Below, piece after piece: positions 8,680 through 32,201 of a stretch of 64,000 nucleotides of DNA. The stretch's first letter is position 1, and every line of letters begins with the position of its first letter. The notes under the pieces were generated by a model, which was given only the letters and a program-made list of their open reading frames with translations, did no database searches and had not been told where the DNA came from. A program made the translations under genes and the position numbers. Source of the DNA: Cyanophora paradoxa CCMP329 (Eukaryota; Plantae; Glaucophyta); the NCBI GenBank assembly GCA_004431415.1, contig QPMI01000039.1:620001-684000 (forward strand), read 5' to 3'.

Positions 8680-8785
8680 GCAGCGCTGCGCGAGGCCTCC
8701 GATCCAGCCTCCAGCGGGCCGGCCCTCGGCTTGGACTCTGGCCACTTGGAGGCTTGAAGTCGCAGGGGGTAGAGGGCGGTTGCGG
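8680..8785 (+). repeat. Dispersed ~100-bp repeat (also at ~21055-21120 on + and ~31815-31902 on -)
   Basis: The motif CGCTGCGCGAGGCCT.CAGCGG...GCCCTCG.CTT.GA.TC....CTT.GAGGCTTG is present in all three places; the third copy is inverted and outside the duplication. Confidence 0.6.
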
Positions 8786-9167
8786 ATTGATCGCAACTGC
8801 CACGGCTCCCTGGGCCCTTCCACGCGGCGGAGGCGCGTGCGGCGGGTCATTCGAGCGCGGGTGCATCCGTACCGGTGCGCACAGCCGAGCGAATCACCAA
8901 GGCCGAAGTTTCATTAGCGTATTCATGTTTCGTGTTCTCTTTCCGGCAGAACGAACGAGCTTGGCTCTCCTCTAAGCGGCTGGCCGTCTTTGGCAGGCCG
9001 GGGCCGCCACGACCGAGATCCGGTCATCGGCCACCCCGCACACGCCTAGCTTCTTCTTGTGAAGGTGCAAGCGTCCCGTAAATTCGTCTAATTAGCGACT
9101 GCAGCTGACGCGTATGGGTTAGCTTGGCTTCCGATAGCCGGCGGCGGCGCCCTTGCAATCAAGCTCA

Positions 9168-12100
9168 ATGGACTTCCTCGGGACGCTGCAGGGCATCATC
9201 GACGTGCGCCCGCAGCTGCGCCGCTGATCATGATCATGATCACATGTACAGGCACTGATCAGATCCCCGTGCGCGGCGCCGCGGCCGGCAGGTTGCGCTG
9301 CGGATCAAGGAGCAGGCGGACGCCGCGAAGGCGAACCGCGCGAAGTGCTCCCGCCTCGCCCGCCGCGTGGCCGACCTCGCCCCGGCCCTGAAGCGTGCGC
9401 GCGCCGCGCGCCGCTGCCGCGGCCGTCTGGTCGACTTGGCTGACGCGCGCGCGCAGAGGTGAAGGCGCGGGGGGCGCCGAAGGCGGGGACGCGGGAGGCG
9501 GAGGCGGCGGAGGGGGCGGCGGGGAGCCTGCTGCAGGCGGCGCGGGAGGCGGAGGCGCTGGTGGCGAAGTTCGGCGGGCGCGGCTTCATGATGCGCTTCA
9601 TCAAGGCGGGGGACGACGCCGCGGCCTTCGAGGAGGCCCACTTCGCCATCGACCGCGCCTGCGCGACCCTCACCGCCTGCACCCTCGTCAAGGCCCGCAC
9701 CACCGCCGCCCGCTCCCTTCCTTAAGCTCCCTTGACGTGGCGGACGGGCCGGGCAGGTGGAGGCGGCGGCGGCGACGGCGGCGGAGCGGGCGGAGGACGA
9801 GCGGGAGGACCGGCGCGCCATGCAGAAGCTCCTCGCCGACTTCCAGGCCTCCTTCGGCGACTTCCGGTGCCCGGCCCCGCCTCCCCTGCCGCCCCGCCCC
9901 GCCGCGCCCCGCCCGAGCGGCGTCCCGGGCCGGGGGCGCAGGGAGGAGTACCGGCAGGACCAGCAGGAGCTGGTGGACGCGCTGCGCGGGCTGCGGCTGC
10001 AGGGGCAGACGACGGGCGACGGCGAGCTCCGGGGCCGCCTCGGCGCCATCGAGGGCCTCCTCCGCCAGCTCGCCGGTCCCGCCCGCGCCTTCTTCACGCT
10101 CCAAAGCCTTACGGCCTCGCAATCTGACGACCCCGCAGAGGGCCGCCCAGCGTCCGCGCCGCCGGCGCCGCCGCAGCGGCCCGTGCGCGTCTCGGGGGCG
10201 GTCGGGCCGAGCCTCATCCGCGACAGCGAGCTTCAGGCCCGCCCGGCGCCCCGGCGCCCCGGCGCGCCCACAAAGGCGGCGGCGGCGCCTCCTGACAGCC
10301 CGGCGCGCAGGTGCGGTGGAAGGAGCGGCCGCTGGGAGAGGGCGCCATGGGCCGCGTCTTCCGCGGCGACTGGCTCGGCCTTCCCGTCGCCGTCAAGAAG
10401 GCCCGCCCCGCCCCGCCGCATCGAGACGGGCGGCGCGCCGAGCGGGGCGGGGGCGGGGGCGTAGGTCACGGTGGGGATGAGCGAGGCGGCGCGGCGCGAG
10501 GTGGACCGCGAGTGCGCCGTGCACGCCGCCCTCCGCCACCCCAACATACTCCAGGCCCGCCCCCGCCCGCCCCCTCCCGCCCTCGTCCGCCGCGATTAGA
10601 TGCCGGCGCGGCGGCAGTTCTACGGGGCGTGCGTGCGGACGAGCGAGGAGGAGGAGGACAGCGTGCTGATCGTGACGGAGCTCGCCGAGGGGGGCACCCT
10701 CGCCGACCACGTCCGCTCGCCGGCCTTCCGGCGGCTGCCGCCGGCCGAGCGGGCGGCCCTCCTGCTCCCCGTCGCCCGCGCCCTCCAGTACATGGCCTCC
10801 CGCGCCAACCCCATCGCCCACGGTCCGCGCCGCCCGACCCCACGCGCGATGCGCTGCGGCCGAGCCTCGGGGGGGCGGCGGGGGCGCAGGGGACCTGAAG
10901 CCGGCGAACGTGCTGATGGTGGGGGCGGCCCCGAAGCTCGCCGACTTCGGCCTCTCGCGCCTGCGGGTGGAGACGCTGCGCTCCCGCACCTCCGTCGGGG
11001 GCACCCCCAACTACGGCCCCCCCGTGCGCCCCGCGGCACTCGCCTGCACCGCCCCGCCGCTCCGAGCACGGGCGCCCACGCCGGGCCGCGCAGGAGCTCT
11101 GGTCGCCGGGCTTCTTCCCGAGCGAGGCGGCCGACGTCTTTGCCTTCGGCTACCTCCTCTGGGTCCGCCCCGCCCCGGCCCGCCGCCGCCGGCTTCTCAG
11201 CTCCAGGCGGGGCGACAGGAGGCGCTGAGCGGGGAGGAGCCGTGGGCGGGCCTCCTCCCGCAGCAGGTCCTCAAGCTCGTCTGCCAGGAGCGCCGGCGGC
11301 CGGCCGTGGACGCTTCGTGGCCGCCCCCGCTGCGCGCCCTGCTCGCCGCCTGCTGGGAGGAGGATCCGGCCCGCCGCCCGCCGTTCGCCCGCGTCGTGCA
11401 GGCGCGTGGGAGGCGATCGCCGCCACTTGCAAGCCGCCGCAAGGGGGCGATGCATATGCGGGACTGATGCTGGGCGACAACGCTGCGCGCAGCTGCTGGC
11501 GGCAGCGACGGAGGAGCCGGCGCCGCGCCCGAGCCCCGCGGCCTCAAGCCCCCTTCCTGTGTGCCTTTGCCCCTTTGCTTGGCTCAGCAATCCCGCCCTG
11601 AGGCCCCGCAGGAGCTGAGCGTGCGGCCGGGGGAGAGCGTCGCGGCCGCCGTGGCGCGGGCCGCCCCGGGGCAGACCGTCCGCATCCAGCCCGGCCGGCG
11701 CGCCCCGTCCCCGGCCCCGAGCCGCGCCTCGGGCCGACCCGGCCCCGCAGGTACGAGGAGCAGCTGGTGCTGGACAAGGCGGTGCACGTCGTCGGGCCGC
11801 GGGAGGCCGTCCTCAAGTGGGACCAGGGCCCTGCCACAGTGCACTGCAAGGGCCCCGCGGCGCCGAGCGTCAAGGGCATCACGATCCGCAACACTGCGCC
11901 AAAGAAGTCTGCGGTGTGGATCACGGACGGGAGCCGGGCGGTCGTGGAGGGCTGCGACGTGTCCAGCGCGGGCCTCAACGGCATCGATGTCAAAGACGAG
12001 GGGACGGCCCCGACGCTGCGCGGTGGGCGCCCCGCCCCCGCCCCCTGCCCTCCGTTTGACCGATTCCGTGCTGCGCAGGGAACGCGGTGCACGACTGCGG

Positions 12101-13290
12101 CGGGGGGGGCATCGTCTTCCACACGTCGGCGAAGGGCGTCGCGGAGGGCAACGACGTCTACGGCAACGCGCTCTCGGGCATCGTGATCGAGACCGGCGCG
12201 GACCCCGTCGTGCGGGGCAACAAGGTCCACGACGGCAAGGAGGCCGGCATCCTCGTGTTCGAGAACGGGCGGGGCACGGTCGAGGGCAACGACGTCTACG
12301 GCAACGCGAAGTCGGGCATCCAGATCTCGATCGGCGCTGACCCCGTCGTGCGGGGCAACACGGTCCACGACGGCAAGGAGGGCGGCATCTTTGTGTACGA
12401 GAACGGGCGGGGCACGGTCGAGGGCAACGACGTCTACGGCAACGTGAGCACGGGCATCGCAATCAAGACCGGAGCGGACCCCGTCGTGCGGGGCAACAAG
12501 GTCCACGACGGCAAGGAGGCCGGCATCCTCGTGTTCGAGAACGGGCGGGGCACGGTCGAGGGCAACGACGTCTACGGCAACGCGAACTTGGGCATCGTGA
12601 TCCAGACCGGCGCTGACCCCGTCGTGCGGGGCAACAAGGTCCACGACGGCAAGGCGGGCGGCATCCTCGTGAATGAGAACGGGCGGGGCACAGTTGAGGG
12701 CAACGACGTCTACGGCAACGTGCAGCCCGGCATCGGGATCTCGACCGGCGCTGACCCCGTCGTGAAGGGCAACAAGGTCCACGACGGCAAGCAGGGCGGC
12801 ATCTTCGTGTGTGAGAACGGGCGGGGCACGGTCGAGGGCAACGACGTCTACGGCAACGCGTTCTCGGGCATCGAGATCAAGACCGGCGCGGACCCCGTCG
12901 TGCGGGGCAACAAGGTCCGCGACGGCAAGCTGGAAGGCATCTTTGTGTACGAGAACGGGCGGGGCACCGTCGAGGGCAACGACGTCTACGGCAATGCGCT
13001 GGCGGGCATCCAGATCAAGACCGGCGCGGACCCCGTCGTCAAGGGCAACCGGTGCGCCCTGGAGCTCCTCTGTGCCTAGTCCCTCCACATCTCCTCGGCC
13101 CCTGACACCCGCCCCCCGCAGGGTCCATGACCAGAAGTTGGGGATCGTCGTGCGAGACAGCGGCAAGGGGACCATCTCTGGGAACACGCTCGAGCGCATC
13201 TCGGACCCCGAGTTCGCAGTGAAGTGCAGCGGCGTCTGGGTACAGAGCGGCTGCACCCCGGTCGTGCAGGGGAACACTTTCCGCCAGTAG
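9168..13290 (+). CDS. Gene A copy 2: MLKL-like four-helix bundle + brace/coiled coil + TKL-type protein kinase + FBXO11-type right-handed beta-helix (~17 exons)
   Basis: Spliced N-terminus MDFLGTLQGIIDVALRIKEQADAAKANRAKCSRLARRVADLAPALKQV...AAREAEALVAKFGGRGFMMRFIKAGDDAAAFEEAHFAI. Kinase motifs LGEGAMGRVF, VAVKK, HPNILQFYG, HGDLKPANVL, DFG, GTPNYGPPE, DVFAFG, CWEEDPARRP. Then ELSVRPGESVAAAVARAAPGQTVRIQPGRYEEQLVLDK and ~7 46-aa repeats. Confidence 0.88.
12147..13050 (+). repeat. 138-bp (46-aa) intron-free coding repeat array, ~6.5 units
   Basis: Unit GNDVYGN-xxx-GIxIxxGADPVV(R/K)GN(K/T)VHDGK-xx-GIxVxENGRGTVE; scaffold DNA is nearly invariant between units. Confidence 0.95.
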
Positions 13291-13987
13291 CGCTAGCGCT
13301 CAAGTTTTGTACGCGAATTGATGAAGTCCTCCGGCCGCCGGCTCGAATCCAGGCAAGGCTGACTCGGAGAGAGCGAGCCCGATGCCAATCGCTATGGCGC
13401 GGATTGCGATCGACGTCGACGGCCGCGGACATGGCCGACGGATGGAGAGGAGCAAACTGCAATACGCGGAATCGGCGGGGCCGCGAACTCCAAGCCGCCA
13501 GCGCACCCGGCCGATGAGAAGAGTCGCCCGCGCCTCGACCTCCGAGCCCGGAGCCCCGCGGCAAGAGAGGACCGCAGCTTCGGTCATATTTACTATATAT
13601 TTGCTAGTTTGTCAAGCGAGAGGCACCGGTGGCGTACGCGTGGTCGCCTGGCCGCGCCGCGGCCGGTGGGAGTGGCCGGCCATGTGCTGGCGAGCTCCCG
13701 CGGGCAGTTTGAGCTCGGCGACGCATCCGATGGTGCCTATGCGCCACCCGGCCACTCCGCCCCGCGCGCCGCCCCGCGCGCGCCTTGGCCCCCAGCATGA
13801 CAAGATGGGCCGGGGTCAGTACTAGTCTGCTGCGGTGCTGGCGGCGGCATGCACCTGGCAAAGTCCACGATCATCGTGGGCATCGGCTCCCGCGGGCAGC
13901 TCGAGCTGGGCGACGCATCCGATGGTGCAATGTGCCGCCCCGCGCGCCGCCCCGCGCGCGCCTTGCATTGGCCCCTGTGCCGCTAAC

Positions 13988-19973: not shown

Positions 19974-21672
19974 ACGGCCACACAAGCGCTTGGCCGTGAG
20001 CAGCATGCGGAGCTCTCTCTCTTATTACATTACTTTCTCTCATCTACTCCTCTACTAAAGTTAGCCATAGTAGTCATGTTTTACACGCCGTGGCGCTATG
20101 AATTAGTATACGTACTTAGCTTCGACGTTAACAAGTAATGCGTATACGTAATGTATGCATGCGCAATTTTAACAGTTACAGCTTTAGATCTGGATTACTT
20201 TCAACAGGGCTACCTGTTTTGCGACTTCATTCGACGGGGTCTGGTGAGGGCGGGCGCCGGGCGGGAGGGCGGGCGCCGGGCCCCGGGCCCCTCTCCGGGC
20301 TCCGGGCTCGGCGCTCGTGCGCCGCCGGCGCCCCGGGCGCCTATCATAGTGCGACGACGGGTTACGCAGGCGGCCCCTGGCCGAGGGCGGGGAACCTGGC
20401 CGAGGTCGGGGGCAGGACCTGGCCGAGGGCGGGGGAGGAGGAGGGGCGGGGGGGCGCCGGCGCCGGCGCGGCCCGCGCGCTCCCCTCCGCCGGCCCGCGC
20501 CGGTCCCGGGGCGGGCCTCCGGGGCAGAGGATGACGGGGAGGCGGGGGCCGGCGCCGGCGAGCGCGGCGCCGGCTCCACTGAAGCGGCGCCGCGCATGCG
20601 CAAGGTCGGCGGAGGCGCCGGCGCCGCTGAGGCCTCCGGGCTGTCCTGCCGCCGCGCCGGGAGGCCTGGGGACAGCGGCTGTTCTCCGCGCACGCGGCGC
20701 CGGCACCGATCGACTTCACCTGCCGCCCCGTCGCGACGGAACGCAGCGGCGGCGCAACGGCGCGCGGCGGCGAGGGCGCGGCGGCACGCGGCGGGACTCG
20801 GGCGAGCGGCAGCGGATGGCGCGGGGCCTGCGCGGAGCCGGAGACCGCGTCGTCGCCCGCGGTTAGCGCGGCGGCGCTGCGCGGTGGAGGACCCTCCGGA
20901 AAGAATCAAACGGACGCACCGATCGTCCTCCATGCCAGCTCCCGCCTCGCGCCCGGCAGCAGCGCGGCGAGCGCCGGTCCCTCTCATGAGAGGAGTCGCT
21001 GGAGTGTGCGGGGGACGAGCACTCTGCGCATACAGCGGGGAAGTTTCAACGCCGCGGCGCTGCGCGAGGCCTACAGCGGGGCTTGCCCTCGCCTTGGATT
21101 CTAACCTTAGAGGCTTGGACAGCCTAGGACGTCGACTATTACATCTCTTAGCTTGTATAGAGCCGCAAGCGGCGGCGGCGGCAGGGGCCAGGGCCAGGCT
21201 AATGGCAGGCTTGGAAGGGGGGGTAGAGGGCGGTTGGGTCGCGACTGCGTCAGCACATCGAGAGGCACACGCGGCGGAGGCGCGCTCGGCGGATCATTAG
21301 AGCACGGGCGGAACCGTACTGGTGCGCGCAGCGCGAATCACCGGGGCCGAAGTTTCATTAGCCTTTTCATGTTTCGTGTTGCTCTTTCCGGCTGAGCGAA
21401 CGAGCTTGGCTCTCCTCTAAGCGGGTAGTTTCCTTTGGCAGGCCGGGGCCGCCACGACCGAGGTCCGGTCATCGGCCGCCCGGCACGCGCGCGCCTATAG
21501 CTAGCTATCCCAATTTGCAACCGTTTAGCTGCTAGCGCTTAGGCCGACAGCTGCAGCTGCTCATGATCATAGACTCTCTTCGGAAGTTCCCCTTCAAGGC
21601 TTCGCCTAGCGCCGTTACCCATGCGCGGCGCGGGTGTGTGCGCAGCGCTGGCGGCGGCCCGCGGCCGGGGCG

Positions 21673-24181
21673 ATGGCGGCGGAGAGCTATGACCTCTTCC
21701 TCTCCCACAAGCAGAGCACGGGCGGCGACCTCGCCGGCCGCATCAAATCCGAGGTCCGCCCCCGTCGCCCGCCCGGCCCGCCCGCCCGGCCGGTTCGAGC
21801 TCCGCGGGCGCAGCTGGAGGTGCTGCGGCCGGGGATCCGCGTCTTCATCGACGTGGACGCTCTGGGCGACATCCACGACCTCGCGGCCGTCATCCGCAGC
21901 ACCCGCTGCTTCGTCCTCATCATCACGCCCGGTGCGCCGCGCGCGCCCGCACCAAAGAGAGCTCGATTCATGATCATCGCCCGCCGCTGCTTATATAATT
22001 ACGCGCGCTCGCTCGCGCCGCAGAGTGGCTGGAGAGCCTGTTCGTCCTGCGGGAGCTTGCCACCGCCGTCCGCGCGCAGCGCCGCATCCTCATCGTCTGG
22101 GACCGCGACCGGCTCCCCAACTTCCCCCAGAGTGCCCCCGCCCCCCAGCCGCTCTCCCGGCGGCCGCCGGGCTGTTAACGTTAAGGCGGCTGCAGTCGAC
22201 TCGCGGACGGTGCTGCCACGCATCGACGAGATGGGCGACGCCGAGCTGCGGGGGACCCTGCAGCGCGTCCTCATGATCAAGGCCCGCCTCGCTCGCCCCG
22301 CCGGCCCCGCTGCGCCCGGCGCGAGGGGCGGCGCAGGCGATTCCGTACATCCGGGAGAAGGCTTTCCGGGAGACGGCGCTGCGGGAGATCCTCCAGCGCT
22401 TCGACGCCGCCCAGCCCTTCCGCATGGACGCCGCCCCGGCCCCCGCCCCGGCCCCCGCCCCCATCAACCACGGCGCTGCGGCTGTGGTGCGCCGCGCGCG
22501 CCGCCGCTCAGCGGCTGCGGCTGCGCGGCGAAGTGACGCGGGGCGGCAGGCGGCGGACATGGCGCGCCTCTCCGTCTCCGTCCGCCCCCCCACCCCCCGC
22601 CCGCCCCGCCCTGCCGGCCCTGAGGCCCCGTAGGAGCTGAGCGTGCGGTCGGGGGAGAGCGTCGCGGCCGCCGTGGCGCGGGCCGCCCCAGGGCAGACAA
22701 TCCGCGTTCAGCCCGGCCGGTGCACATGCGTCCCTTCCCCGGCCCAGAGCGGCCCCTCGGACCGACCCGGCGCCGCAGGTACAAGGAGCAGCTGGTGCTG
22801 GACAAGGCGGTGCACGTCGTCGGGCCGCGGGAGGCCGTCCTCGAGTGGGACCAGAGCCCCACGCTGCACTGCAAAGGGCCTGTGGCGCCGAGCGTCAAGG
22901 GCATCACGATCCGGAACACGGGGCCGAAGAATGGGACACTGTGGATCACGGGCGGGAGCCAGGCGGTCGTGGAGGGCTGCGATGTGTCCAGCGCCGGCAT
23001 GAACGGCATCGAAGTCAAAGACGACGGGACGGCCCCGACGCTGCGCGGTGGGCGCCCCGGCCCACCCCCGCCCCCTGCCCTCCGTTTGACCGATTCCGCG
23101 ATGCGCAGGGAACGCGGTGCACGACTGCGGCGGGGCGGGCATCTTCTTCTACACGTCGGCAAAGGGCGTCGCGGAGGGCAACGACGTCTACGGCAACGCG
23201 AACTCGGGCATCCAGATCAGTGAGGGCGCGGACCCCGTCGTGAAGGGCAACAAGGTCCACGACGGCAAGGCGGCCGGCATGTACGTGCTGGAGAACGGGC
23301 GGGGCACGGTCGAGGGCAACGACGTCTACGGCAACGCGAACTCGGGCATCGCAATCAAGACCGGCGCGGACCCCGTCGTGCGGGGCAACAAGGTCCACGA
23401 CGGCAAGCAGGGCGGCATCCTCGTGTACGAGAACGGGCGGGGCACGGTCGAGGGCAACGACGTCTACGGCAACGCGAAGTCGGGCATCCAGATCTCGATC
23501 GGCGCTGACCCCGTCGTGCGGGGCAACACGGTCCACGACGGCAAGGCGGGCGGCATCCTCGTGAATGAGAACGGGCGGGGCACAGTTGAGGGCAACGACG
23601 TCTACGGCAACGTGCAGCCCGGCATCGGGATCTCGACCGGCGCTGACCCCGTCGTGAAGGGCAACAAGGTCCACGACGGCAAGCAGGGCGGCATCTTCGT
23701 GTGTGAGAACGGGCGGGGCACGGTCGAGGGCAACGACGTCTACGGCAACGCGTTCTCGGGCATCGAGATCAAGACCGGCGCGGACCCCGTCGTGCGGGGC
23801 AACAAGGTCCGCGACGGCAAGCTGGAAGGCATCTTTGTGTACGAGAACGGGCGGGGCACCGTCGAGGGCAACGACGTCTACGGCAATGCGCTGGCGGGCA
23901 TCCAGATCAGGGAGGGCGCGGACCCCGTCGTGCGGGGCAACCGGTGCGCCCGCGAGCTCCTCTGTGCCTATAATCCCCCCGCATCTCCTCCGCCCCTGAC
24001 ACCCGCCCCCCGCAGGGTGCACGACCAGAAGTACGGGATCTGCGTGCGAGACGGCGGCAAGGGCACCATTTCTGGGAACACGCTCGAGCGCATCTCGGAC
24101 CCGTCCTACGCGCCCTGCAGCGGCGTGAAGGTCCTCGACGGCTGCACCCCGGCCGTGCAGGGGAACACGTTCCGCCAGTAG
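21673..24181 (+). CDS. Gene A copy 3: SARM1-like TIR domain + FBXO11-type right-handed beta-helix
   Basis: Spliced MAAESYDLFLSHKQSTGGDLAGRIKSE|LEVLRPGIRVFIDVDALGDIHDLAAVIRSTRCFVLIITP|EWLESLFVLRELATAVRAQRRILIVWD...KAIPYIREKAFRETALREILQRF. A Pro/Ala linker follows, then ELSVRSGESVAAAVARAAPGQTIRVQPGRYKEQLVLDK and ~6 repeats. Confidence 0.9.
23177..23942 (+). repeat. 138-bp (46-aa) intron-free coding repeat array, ~5.5 units
   Basis: Same scaffold as 12147-13050; several units are identical to units of that array. Confidence 0.95.
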
Positions 24182-24857
24182 CGCTTGAATTGTGTTTGTC
24201 CTAGCTATGGTTGAATTGTGTGAAGTCCTCCGGGCGCTGGCTCGAATCCAGACAAGGCCGACTCGGAGAGAGCGAGCCCGAGGCCAATCGCTATGGCGCG
24301 GATTGCGATCGACGTCGACGGCCGCGGACATGGCCGACGGATGGAGAGGAGCAAACTGCAATACGCGGAATCGGCGGGGCCGCGAACTCCAAGCCGCCAG
24401 CGCACCCGGCCGATGAGAAGAGTCGCCCGCGCCTCGACCTCCGAGCCCGGAGCGCCGGGGCGAGTCGAGAGGACTAGAGATTCGGTCAAATTTCCTATTT
24501 GCTAGTTTGTCAAGCGAGAGGCACCGGTGGCGTACGCGTGGTCGCCAGACGCTCCACTGGGCCATCGATGATCAGTCGCGGCCCTGGTCGCCTAGATCAG
24601 CCTAATTATAAGCCATCAGACGCCGTTGCGGCAGCGCGCCTTGACGCTGACGGATCTGAACGCTTACCAGTATGGATCATGGATCAGTACTAGTCTGCTG
24701 CGGTGCCGGCGGCAGCACGCACCTGGCGAAGTCCACGGCCATCGTGGGCATCGGCTCCCGCGGCCAGCTCGAGCTCGGCGACGCATCCGATGGTGCCTAT
24801 GCGCCGCCTGGCCCCTCCGCCCTGCGCGCCGCCTCGCGCGCGCCCCGTGCCGCTCAC

Positions 24858-31299: not shown

Positions 31300-32201
31300 T
31301 CATGAGGGGAAGCCGCCGGGCCCTCGCTGACTGCCCCGCCATCCTTCCGCTAAGCTCCTCGAATATAACAGACCGTGCCCGCTGCCTCGAGCCGCTAGAT
31401 TCGACAGAGCTCTGCCTTCCTGGCGGGCGTGACGGGAGCTGTGCTAGGCCCAGGGCGGGTTCTCGAGGAGGAAAGCGCGGAGCCGGTCCAGGGCGCGGCG
31501 CGGGCGGCGGTGCGAGATCCTGTTCTTCTCCGCCCGCTCCATCTCCGCGAGCCTGGCGCCCCGTTGACGTCGACTTCGGAAGGAGCACGTGCACGCCGTG
31601 ACGGGGGCGGGGTAGCTACGAAGTATAGCGCACGTTTGGCTGGAGCCGTTGGGCTGGAACGGCCACGTCCACTCGGAGTCTCAGGGCCGATTTCATCGCA
31701 CCGGCAGTGCCACGGTGCGCCCTGGTTGAATGATCCGTCGATCGCGCCTGCGCCGCGCAGGAGGGCCGGCGCCGCACGCAGTCGACGTTGCGACCCGATC
31801 AAGCCCAGCCAAGTGCAACCTCTACCCCGTAGCGGCTCCAAGCCTCGAAGGTTCGAGTCTAAGCCGAGGGCAGGTGCCGCTGGAGGCCTCGCGCAGCGCT
31901 GTTCGCCGCGCGCAAGCGCTCGTCCGCCGTGCGCTTCAGCGACGCCTCTGTCAGGTCGTCGCACAGGTCAGGGCCGGTGGTCAGGCGGCCCTCTAGATCT
32001 GTCAGGTCGTCAGCCTCTGTCAGGCGGCGGTCAGGCATGTCACGAGGCGACAGAACCCACCACGCTAAACCATTGCACAGGCGCGTCAGGTGTGTCGCTT
32101 CTGGAGCTCAGGCACCGCGCGCAGTTCGTCGCAGTTCTGTAGGCACAACGGCAACACACTTCGACATAAATCCGCTTGAGCTCTCCCGCGGCCGTCTGGT
32201 C

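Follow-up and report, generated by a model that had tools for sequence, protein, structure and literature searches.

A Cyanophora gene uniting an MLKL_N-like head, a catalytically complete kinase and a beta-helix in one chain, with a tandem paralogue carrying a TIR module

The stretch of DNA considered here, 64,000 nucleotides from the glaucophyte Cyanophora paradoxa CCMP329 (contig QPMI01000039.1, positions 620,001 to 684,000 of the forward strand; henceforth 'the window'), carries a spliced gene whose single product combines an MLKL_N-like helical head, an acidic connector, a protein kinase with all its key motifs intact and a long C-terminal beta-helix. Within the same window lies a tandem paralogue that has the upstream block, the beta-helix and the 3' end in common with this gene, and in which a TIR module replaces the head and the kinase. 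The architecture is solid; it is the function that we infer. The reading we favor, to which we assign a probability of about one half, is that of a one-chain immune receptor in which the beta-helix would act as the sensor, the putatively active kinase as the switch, and the head together with the connector as the output. The evidence that leads us to a sensor-effector arrangement of this kind includes the swap of effectors between the tandem genes, the variable face of the beta-helix, the bacterial relatives that couple the beta-helix to effector domains, and the precedent of the wheat protein Pm13. The constituent parts of the protein are encoded as follows:

9168-9692, plus strand: exons 1-3, residues 1-125, MLKL_N-like helical head, basic (isoelectric point, pI, 9.4); joints 9203>9292, 9394>9457 and 9692>9757 in RNA contigs
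9757-10236, plus strand: exons 4-6, residues 126-239, acidic 'brace' region and Pro/Ala-rich linker; joints 9866>9942, 10075>10139 and 10236>10311 in RNA contigs
10311-11401, plus strand: exons 7-12, residues 240-496 (about), protein kinase resembling the tyrosine kinase-like (TKL) group, non-RD (HGD); five internal joints in RNA contigs
11493-11558, plus strand: exon 13, residues 497-518, Pro/Ala/Ser linker joining kinase and beta-helix; joint 11401>11493 in RNA contigs
11612-13289, plus strand: exons 14-17, residues 519-1017, FBXO11/CASH-type right-handed parallel beta-helix

The G+C content of the window is 58-79% per 2-kb bin, exceeding 68% in most bins, and the region is readable only as a spliced eukaryotic gene. 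Once joined, the exons form an open frame free of stops. On the plus strand, between 9168 and 13289, 17 exons encode a protein of about 1017 residues with zero stops or frameshifts after joining and a TAG stop codon at about 13287-13289:

9168-9203, 9292-9394, 9457-9692, 9757-9866, 9942-10075, 10139-10236, plus strand: exons 1-6
10311-10400, 10465-10554, 10618-10822, 10890-11023, 11094-11162, 11219-11401, plus strand: exons 7-12
11493-11558, 11612-11697, 11751-12022, 12079-13051, 13122-13289, plus strand: exons 13-17

The transcript evidence consists of contigs from runs X1-X3, which behave as RNA and come from two studies, with run X16 serving as the DNA control. Across 9168-13122 the X1-X3 contigs display the skipping of 13 stretches, each with GT-AG or GC-AG ends; the joints covered are those up to exon 13 along with 12022>12079 and 13051>13122. 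The DNA run keeps several of the same stretches unspliced and contains none of these joints. All 16 introns have GT-AG or GC-AG ends, six of them being GC-AG and four of these sharing the donor GCCCGC; the GC-AG introns fall between 9693 and 11750, and RNA contigs confirm all but the one at 11698-11750, which is predicted. Such donors are easily overlooked by gene predictors. The depth of the RNA contigs is similar across the three runs, and no membrane-spanning or signal peptide-like stretch was found in the protein. The gene is expressed and intact, and its product is soluble.

The two ends of the model, as well as the junction between the kinase and the beta-helix, call for some further remarks. 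Upstream of the joint 9203>9292 the RNA piece spans only 83 nucleotides and begins near 9121, behind a TAG acceptor; hence, the 5' untranslated region (5'UTR) is itself spliced at about 9121, and a non-coding exon probably lies further upstream, its predicted position being within the block that is common to both tandem genes. The RNA piece following the joint 11401>11493 measures 70 nucleotides in all three runs, which sets the end of exon 13 at 11558, before a GT donor. The alternative of ending the exon at 11540, before a GC donor, was dropped, as the 70-nucleotide piece fits 11558. At exon 14, the donor at 11697 occupies the position that a GT donor has in the paralogue, and an X2 contig covers 11668-11696 at a depth of 33.2, equal to that of the kinase contig. 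A first-pass annotation made from the sequence had set the gene at 9168-11560 and credited it with an appended sensor. The start stands; the end falls two bases past exon 13, while the gene reaches about 13289. The chain does have a further domain, in the form of the beta-helix, but that domain lies wholly outside the range originally given (11612-13289).

The assignment of the head comes from a scan of the individual exons against 24,736 Pfam families, in which the cut-off for MLKL_N (PF22215) is 27 bits. The best family for exon 2 (34 residues) is MLKL_N (17.6 bits, E = 0.0028, profile positions 9-39), and the same family comes out best for exon 3 (78 residues; 16.3 bits, E = 0.007, profile positions 54-105). 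The two matches are collinear, being separated by 19 residues in the protein versus 15 in the profile, and the family was matched by none of 10 control open reading frames of the same composition taken from the wrong frame or the antisense strand. A language-model search with exon 3 recovered MLKL_N clusters of plants and oomycetes at 0.85 (ranks 14 and 18), which we treat as a lead only. The sequence pattern further suggests an amphipathic helix that opens the head from Met1. Given the two collinear matches, the negative controls, the very N-terminal position and the basic charge, we consider it likely that the head genuinely belongs to the MLKL_N/HeLo kind. The first-pass annotation had arrived at a likeness to the MLKL N-terminal bundle from two peptides. 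Both are present in the spliced reading only, the first across the joint of exons 1 and 2 (9203>9292) and the second in exon 3, and the exon-wise profile comparison bears this likeness out.

The connector that follows has no Pfam match in exons 4-6. Its residues 126-206 are acidic (pI 4.7), as opposed to the basic residues 1-125, and are predicted to be helical with about three helical stretches. Thus, of the acidic brace-like helix proposed earlier, the acidity is borne out, and the helix is a prediction from the sequence pattern only.

In the kinase, the exons match the PK_Tyr_Ser-Thr and Pkinase profiles of Pfam in collinear order, and the RNA-supported mRNA contains every motif that had been listed as intact, namely GxGxxG (GEGAMG at 248), VAVK (265-268, with Lys268), HGDLKPAN (367) and DFG (386). 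A glutamate precedes the HPN motif by nine residues, PPE replaces APE at 411, and the usual C-lobe motifs are present; judging from these residues the kinase looks catalytically active. It is also a non-RD kinase, as previously claimed, because the residue before the catalytic aspartate is glycine, not arginine. This His-Gly-Asp is read in the mRNA, the glycine codon being split across the joint 10822>10890 in RNA contigs of the three runs. MLKL likewise has a glycine after the histidine of its catalytic loop (HGK). When the exons were searched singly against solved chains, the best matches of the C-lobe exon were ZAK/MLT, Roco4, CTR1, MLK4, TNNI3K and ILK, with CERK1 and CTR1 being the nearest to the other kinase exons. 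By its sequence the kinase belongs with the TKL group.

The beta-helix is recognized by Pfam as Beta_helix (1.7e-66) and NosD (5.7e-37), and comprises six whole double coils of 46 residues and seven starts of the repeat motif. AlphaFold2 models exon 16 as all-beta coils, with three strands per 23-residue coil, at a mean predicted local distance difference test score (pLDDT) of 95.6. Foldseek searches with the beta-helix model retrieve alginate epimerases and tailspikes. The 46-residue units combine an invariant scaffold with variable positions (8-10, 13, 15, 32-33, 36 and 38), which in each coil map to the first strand and to the turn preceding it, i.e. to one face of the sheet. No exon has a Pfam match to an F-box or a UBR zinc finger. 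Nor does any exon match NB-ARC/NACHT or another P-loop NTPase, and no unassigned stretch is long enough to hold one.

A modular effector is indicated by the tandem paralogue (gene 2). The two relevant features are:

8765-9045, plus strand: upstream block common with the TIR gene (gene 2), probably promoter and non-coding first exon; 82% identical to 21219-21490
21219-24399, plus strand: gene 2, tandem paralogue with the common upstream block, beta-helix and 3' end; TIR replaces head and kinase

In blastn comparisons the genes share, apart from this upstream block, the segments 11592-13500 and 22614-24399 at 88-92% nucleotide identity, and between the shared blocks the exons of gene 2 are unrelated to those of the head and kinase. 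The right breakpoint (11592/22614) lies in an intron, 20 nucleotides before the acceptor of exon 14. The left one (9045/21490), where the similarity ends about 120 nucleotides before the ATG, precedes the coding exons by a short distance and probably coincides with the border between a 5'UTR exon and its intron. As neither breakpoint falls within coding exons, the exchange has taken in the entire effector-coding module, as one cassette. In gene 2, the TIR exons match the EukProt model tig00000157_g9717.t1 (P0121) at 97-100%, and the first beta-helix exon does so at 100%. Pfam finds TIR_2 (E = 4.5e-6) and Beta_helix (5e-102) in this model; the TIR exons of gene 2 taken singly gave no Pfam match, and the TIR is confirmed only via the full-length model P0121. 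The last two to three beta-helix units are identical in protein between the two genes, and the first units differ or are reshuffled (12147-13050 versus 23180-23940). No second copy of the head or the kinase was found within the 64-kb window.

Relatives of the beta-helix occur in paralogues from the same genome, in animal FBXO11 and in many bacterial proteins of 500-950 residues. In the latter, it is found C-terminal to TIR_2 (in many cases), to Pkinase (P0135 and P0139) or to a caspase (P0166), and in the examples P0011, P0177, P0135, P0139 and P0166 it is at most about 50% identical to the algal one. These bacterial proteins thus resemble the algal pair in having the same beta-helix behind an exchangeable effector, and differ in that an MLKL_N head was seen in none of the bacterial beta-helix relatives. 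PADLOC recognized the effector domains of the bacterial relatives but not the beta-helix, and it named no defence system for them. A further relative, P0001, labelled as coming from a Rhodobacter metagenome-assembled genome, shares 56% identity with exon 16 over 93% of its length. Among the algal paralogues, P0119 (tig00000227_g19834.t1) passes from a kinase C-lobe directly into the beta-helix and is 44% identical to residues 377-710. The published models of the family are fragmentary, P0119 itself beginning mid-kinase, and such models along with the GC-AG introns may be the reason why the architecture is absent from the papers of the library that was searched. We found no paper linking Cyanophora with MLKL, and a survey of conflict systems mentions neither the beta-helix nor FBXO11 (Kaur et al., 2020).

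Taking the favored reading further, the beta-helix would be the ligand-binding sensor of a small receptor family that lacks an NTPase, and the N-terminal module would be its exchangeable effector. Ligand binding would either gather several chains or release an intramolecular lock, upon which the active kinase would phosphorylate itself or a neighboring chain, a step that RIPK3 performs on animal MLKL. The head and connector would then be freed to oligomerize and act on a membrane; alternatively, the output might be as in wheat Pm13, with the connector-kinase unit signaling cell death. The self-contained necroptosis-like switch proposed in the first-pass annotation would likewise be a reading of the architecture.

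A comparison can be drawn with receptors of the NLR/STAND type in fungi and plants, with their HeLo, CC/RPW8 or TIR heads. There, as would be the case here, a variable repeat sensor is combined with alternative N-terminal death effectors; in contrast, the algal chain has no NTPase, a kinase is in the position of the switch, and the beta-helix replaces the LRR, WD40 or TPR repeats. We more tentatively raise the possibility, which we hold to be doubtful at present, that Cyanophora possesses an entire NTPase-less receptor family, in which a beta-helix with a variable face is recombined by cassette exchange with either TIR effectors or MLKL-type heads bringing their own kinase, a scheme it would share with the bacterial TIR-, caspase- and kinase-beta-helix proteins. 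If this is true, the chain with the MLKL-type head and active kinase would be a self-activating necroptosis switch, uniting the functions of RIPK3 and MLKL in one protein.

Several observations weigh against the receptor reading. First, as regards the head, each of the two MLKL_N matches on its own scores below the 27-bit cut-off, though their sum of 33.9 bits exceeds it. Neither phmmer against 1.84 billion representatives nor a word-indexed search of a 5.8-billion set returned a single match for exon 3, blanks that are weakened by the shortness of the query and the length limits. A phmmer search of the solved structures gave one chance-level match and no MLKL. AlphaFold2 models exon 3 alone weakly, as two helices with a pLDDT of 66. 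(The prediction of exons 2 and 3 as a two-chain complex, with a score of 0.15 against a mark of 0.34, weighs neither way, and the head seems to be missing from the 1.84-billion library as such.) Second, neither MLKL nor RIPK figures among the nearest solved chains of the kinase exons; without any such special likeness, common descent of the whole protein with animal MLKL is unsupported. Third, the identity of the C-terminal repeats between the two genes limits any 'diversified sensor' to the first repeats, and, as the nearest solved beta-helices are enzymes acting on sugars and tailspikes, the domain might bind a glycan or serve some other purpose altogether. Fourth, by the precedent of the Pm13 four-helix bundle the head may be regulatory instead of being the executioner. 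Finally, the joints 11558>11612 and 11697>11751, both in frame, are predicted ones that are not among the displayed joints.

The comparison with Pm13 gives rise to the strongest of the rival explanations. This protein (MLKL-K) of wheat and Aegilops has an MLKL_NTD head, a brace and a kinase with all its key residues (PMC10951266), which renders outdated the premise of the first-pass annotation that every MLKL of animals and plants is a pseudokinase. In wheat only the brace-kinase fragment kills, and it does so in a kinase-dependent manner; the four-helix bundle, with or without the brace, does not (PMC11297308). Hence, in the algal protein as well, the kinase and connector might signal death or defence, with the head being autoinhibitory or a decoy, and the beta-helix still sensing. 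The intact motifs of the algal kinase and the roughly three predicted helical stretches of its connector, as in Pm13, speak for this, and neither protein has a signal peptide, the multi-helix brace of Pm13 having a predicted counterpart in the alga and an immune role having been shown for Pm13. Yet Pm13 has 476 residues and ends after the kinase, and the algal head is basic and sits at a free N-terminus, as do membrane-acting MLKL, HeLo and coiled-coil (CC) domains. Moreover, MLKL_NTD-kinase fusions arose at least three times within the grasses (PMC11297308); they are recent and grass-specific, so that nothing would have been inherited by descent. As these fusions are dated within Poaceae, common descent is unlikely, and the algal gene would have been assembled independently of them. 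Since Pm13 already combines an MLKL head with an intact kinase, the novelty lies in the beta-helix and in the swap of effectors. On balance, we regard a Pm13-type output as unlikely, although it is the alternative that has to be taken most seriously.

The algal chain can also be compared with the MLKLs of animals and Arabidopsis. Animal MLKL has the same order of an N-terminal MLKL_N head, a helical connector (predicted in the alga) and a TKL-type kinase fold; however, it is a pseudokinase switched by a separate RIPK3, whereas the algal chain retains HGD, DFG and VAVK, adds a beta-helix of 500 residues and has a kinase with no special sequence affinity to MLKL. AtMLKL1-3 of Arabidopsis combine a HeLo/four-helix-bundle-like head, a brace, a kinase-like domain and a C-terminal addition, and act in immunity (bioRxiv 10.1101/681015). 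Their kinase-like domains have been described as those of pseudokinases, and their C-terminal extension is not a beta-helix.

Second among the rivals, and less likely still, is a substrate-directed signaling kinase with no role in cell death, in which the beta-helix would recruit a protein or glycan partner and the head would target or oligomerize the protein. In FBXO11 the beta-helix is the substrate-recognition part. The algal domain is of the same beta-helix repeat family (CASH/PbH1), and its paralogue P0002 is 33-37% identical to the substrate-binding beta-helix of FBXO11, which along with the bacterial kinase-beta-helix proteins P0135 and P0139, both without a helical head, would fit such a role. 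However, the algal beta-helix is joined to modules of the death or immune type and not to a ubiquitin ligase, with neither F-box nor UBR zinc finger in the chain. The TIR on the beta-helix of the sister gene, like the TIR and caspase domains in bacteria, is company typical of immune and suicide effectors and less so of housekeeping signaling.

A third explanation, that the likeness to MLKL_N arose by chance in an Ala/Arg-rich helical region and that the gene is a TKL kinase-beta-helix fusion with an unrelated coiled N-terminus, is improbable in our estimate. The sub-threshold scores of the single exons, the lack of phmmer homologues and a language-model score of only 0.85 are what it would predict; but that two separate pieces, correctly ordered and spaced, both rank one and the same family first among 24,736, when the 10 control frames do not, and together reach 33.9 bits, is hard to attribute to composition. 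Lastly, that this is a recent recombination product heading to decay and expressed without any selected function is scarcely credible: the tandem cluster shows evident cassette exchange and gene conversion and a second DNA version diverges from 11668 on, but 17 exons have kept their frame, 16 of 16 introns their GT/GC-AG ends and the kinase all its motifs, 13 displayed joints are spliced in RNA, and the depth of the RNA contigs is similar in the three runs.

Executioners of the MLKL type are found in animals, seed plants and fungi (in the last as HeLo/HELL domains). The present gene would extend the MLKL-head/kinase architecture to the earliest-branching lineage of Archaeplastida, and bears on how and when an MLKL-type head became coupled to a kinase fold. 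With its probable head of this type, a catalytically complete kinase and a candidate sensor, the glaucophyte protein offers a model, open to testing, of how a death switch gated by phosphorylation could work in one chain. The TIR sister gene is in effect a natural experiment, having a common promoter and sensor and a different effector that was swapped en bloc, from a border near the 5'UTR to an intron. On the receptor reading, such a swap illustrates a way of remodeling immune receptors by exon shuffling in the absence of an NLR scaffold. Beyond the alga, the many bacterial proteins coupling effectors to beta-helices point to an undescribed class of sensors in conflict systems.

We also noted some additional copies and variants of parts of the locus. 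A third beta-helix gene runs over the left edge of the window, its 3' end occupying positions 1-572 and being 87.5% identical to 12936-13500. The C-terminus of P0121 matches positions 187-351 of the window at 100%, i.e. the left-edge copy and not gene 2, suggesting that the older assembly or the model P0121 itself may be chimeric between copies. Just upstream of the block shared by the tandem genes, 8681-8852 has a weak match of 68% to 31728-31901 on the minus strand, where the upstream element may thus recur. Finally, the DNA contig X16-9 is exact to the window over 11330-11667, and then has 13 letter differences as well as insertions of GT (after 11697) and ACAT (after 11699). The first five of these differences are also borne by an X2 RNA contig: this expressed version is either a second allele or a copy produced by recombination.

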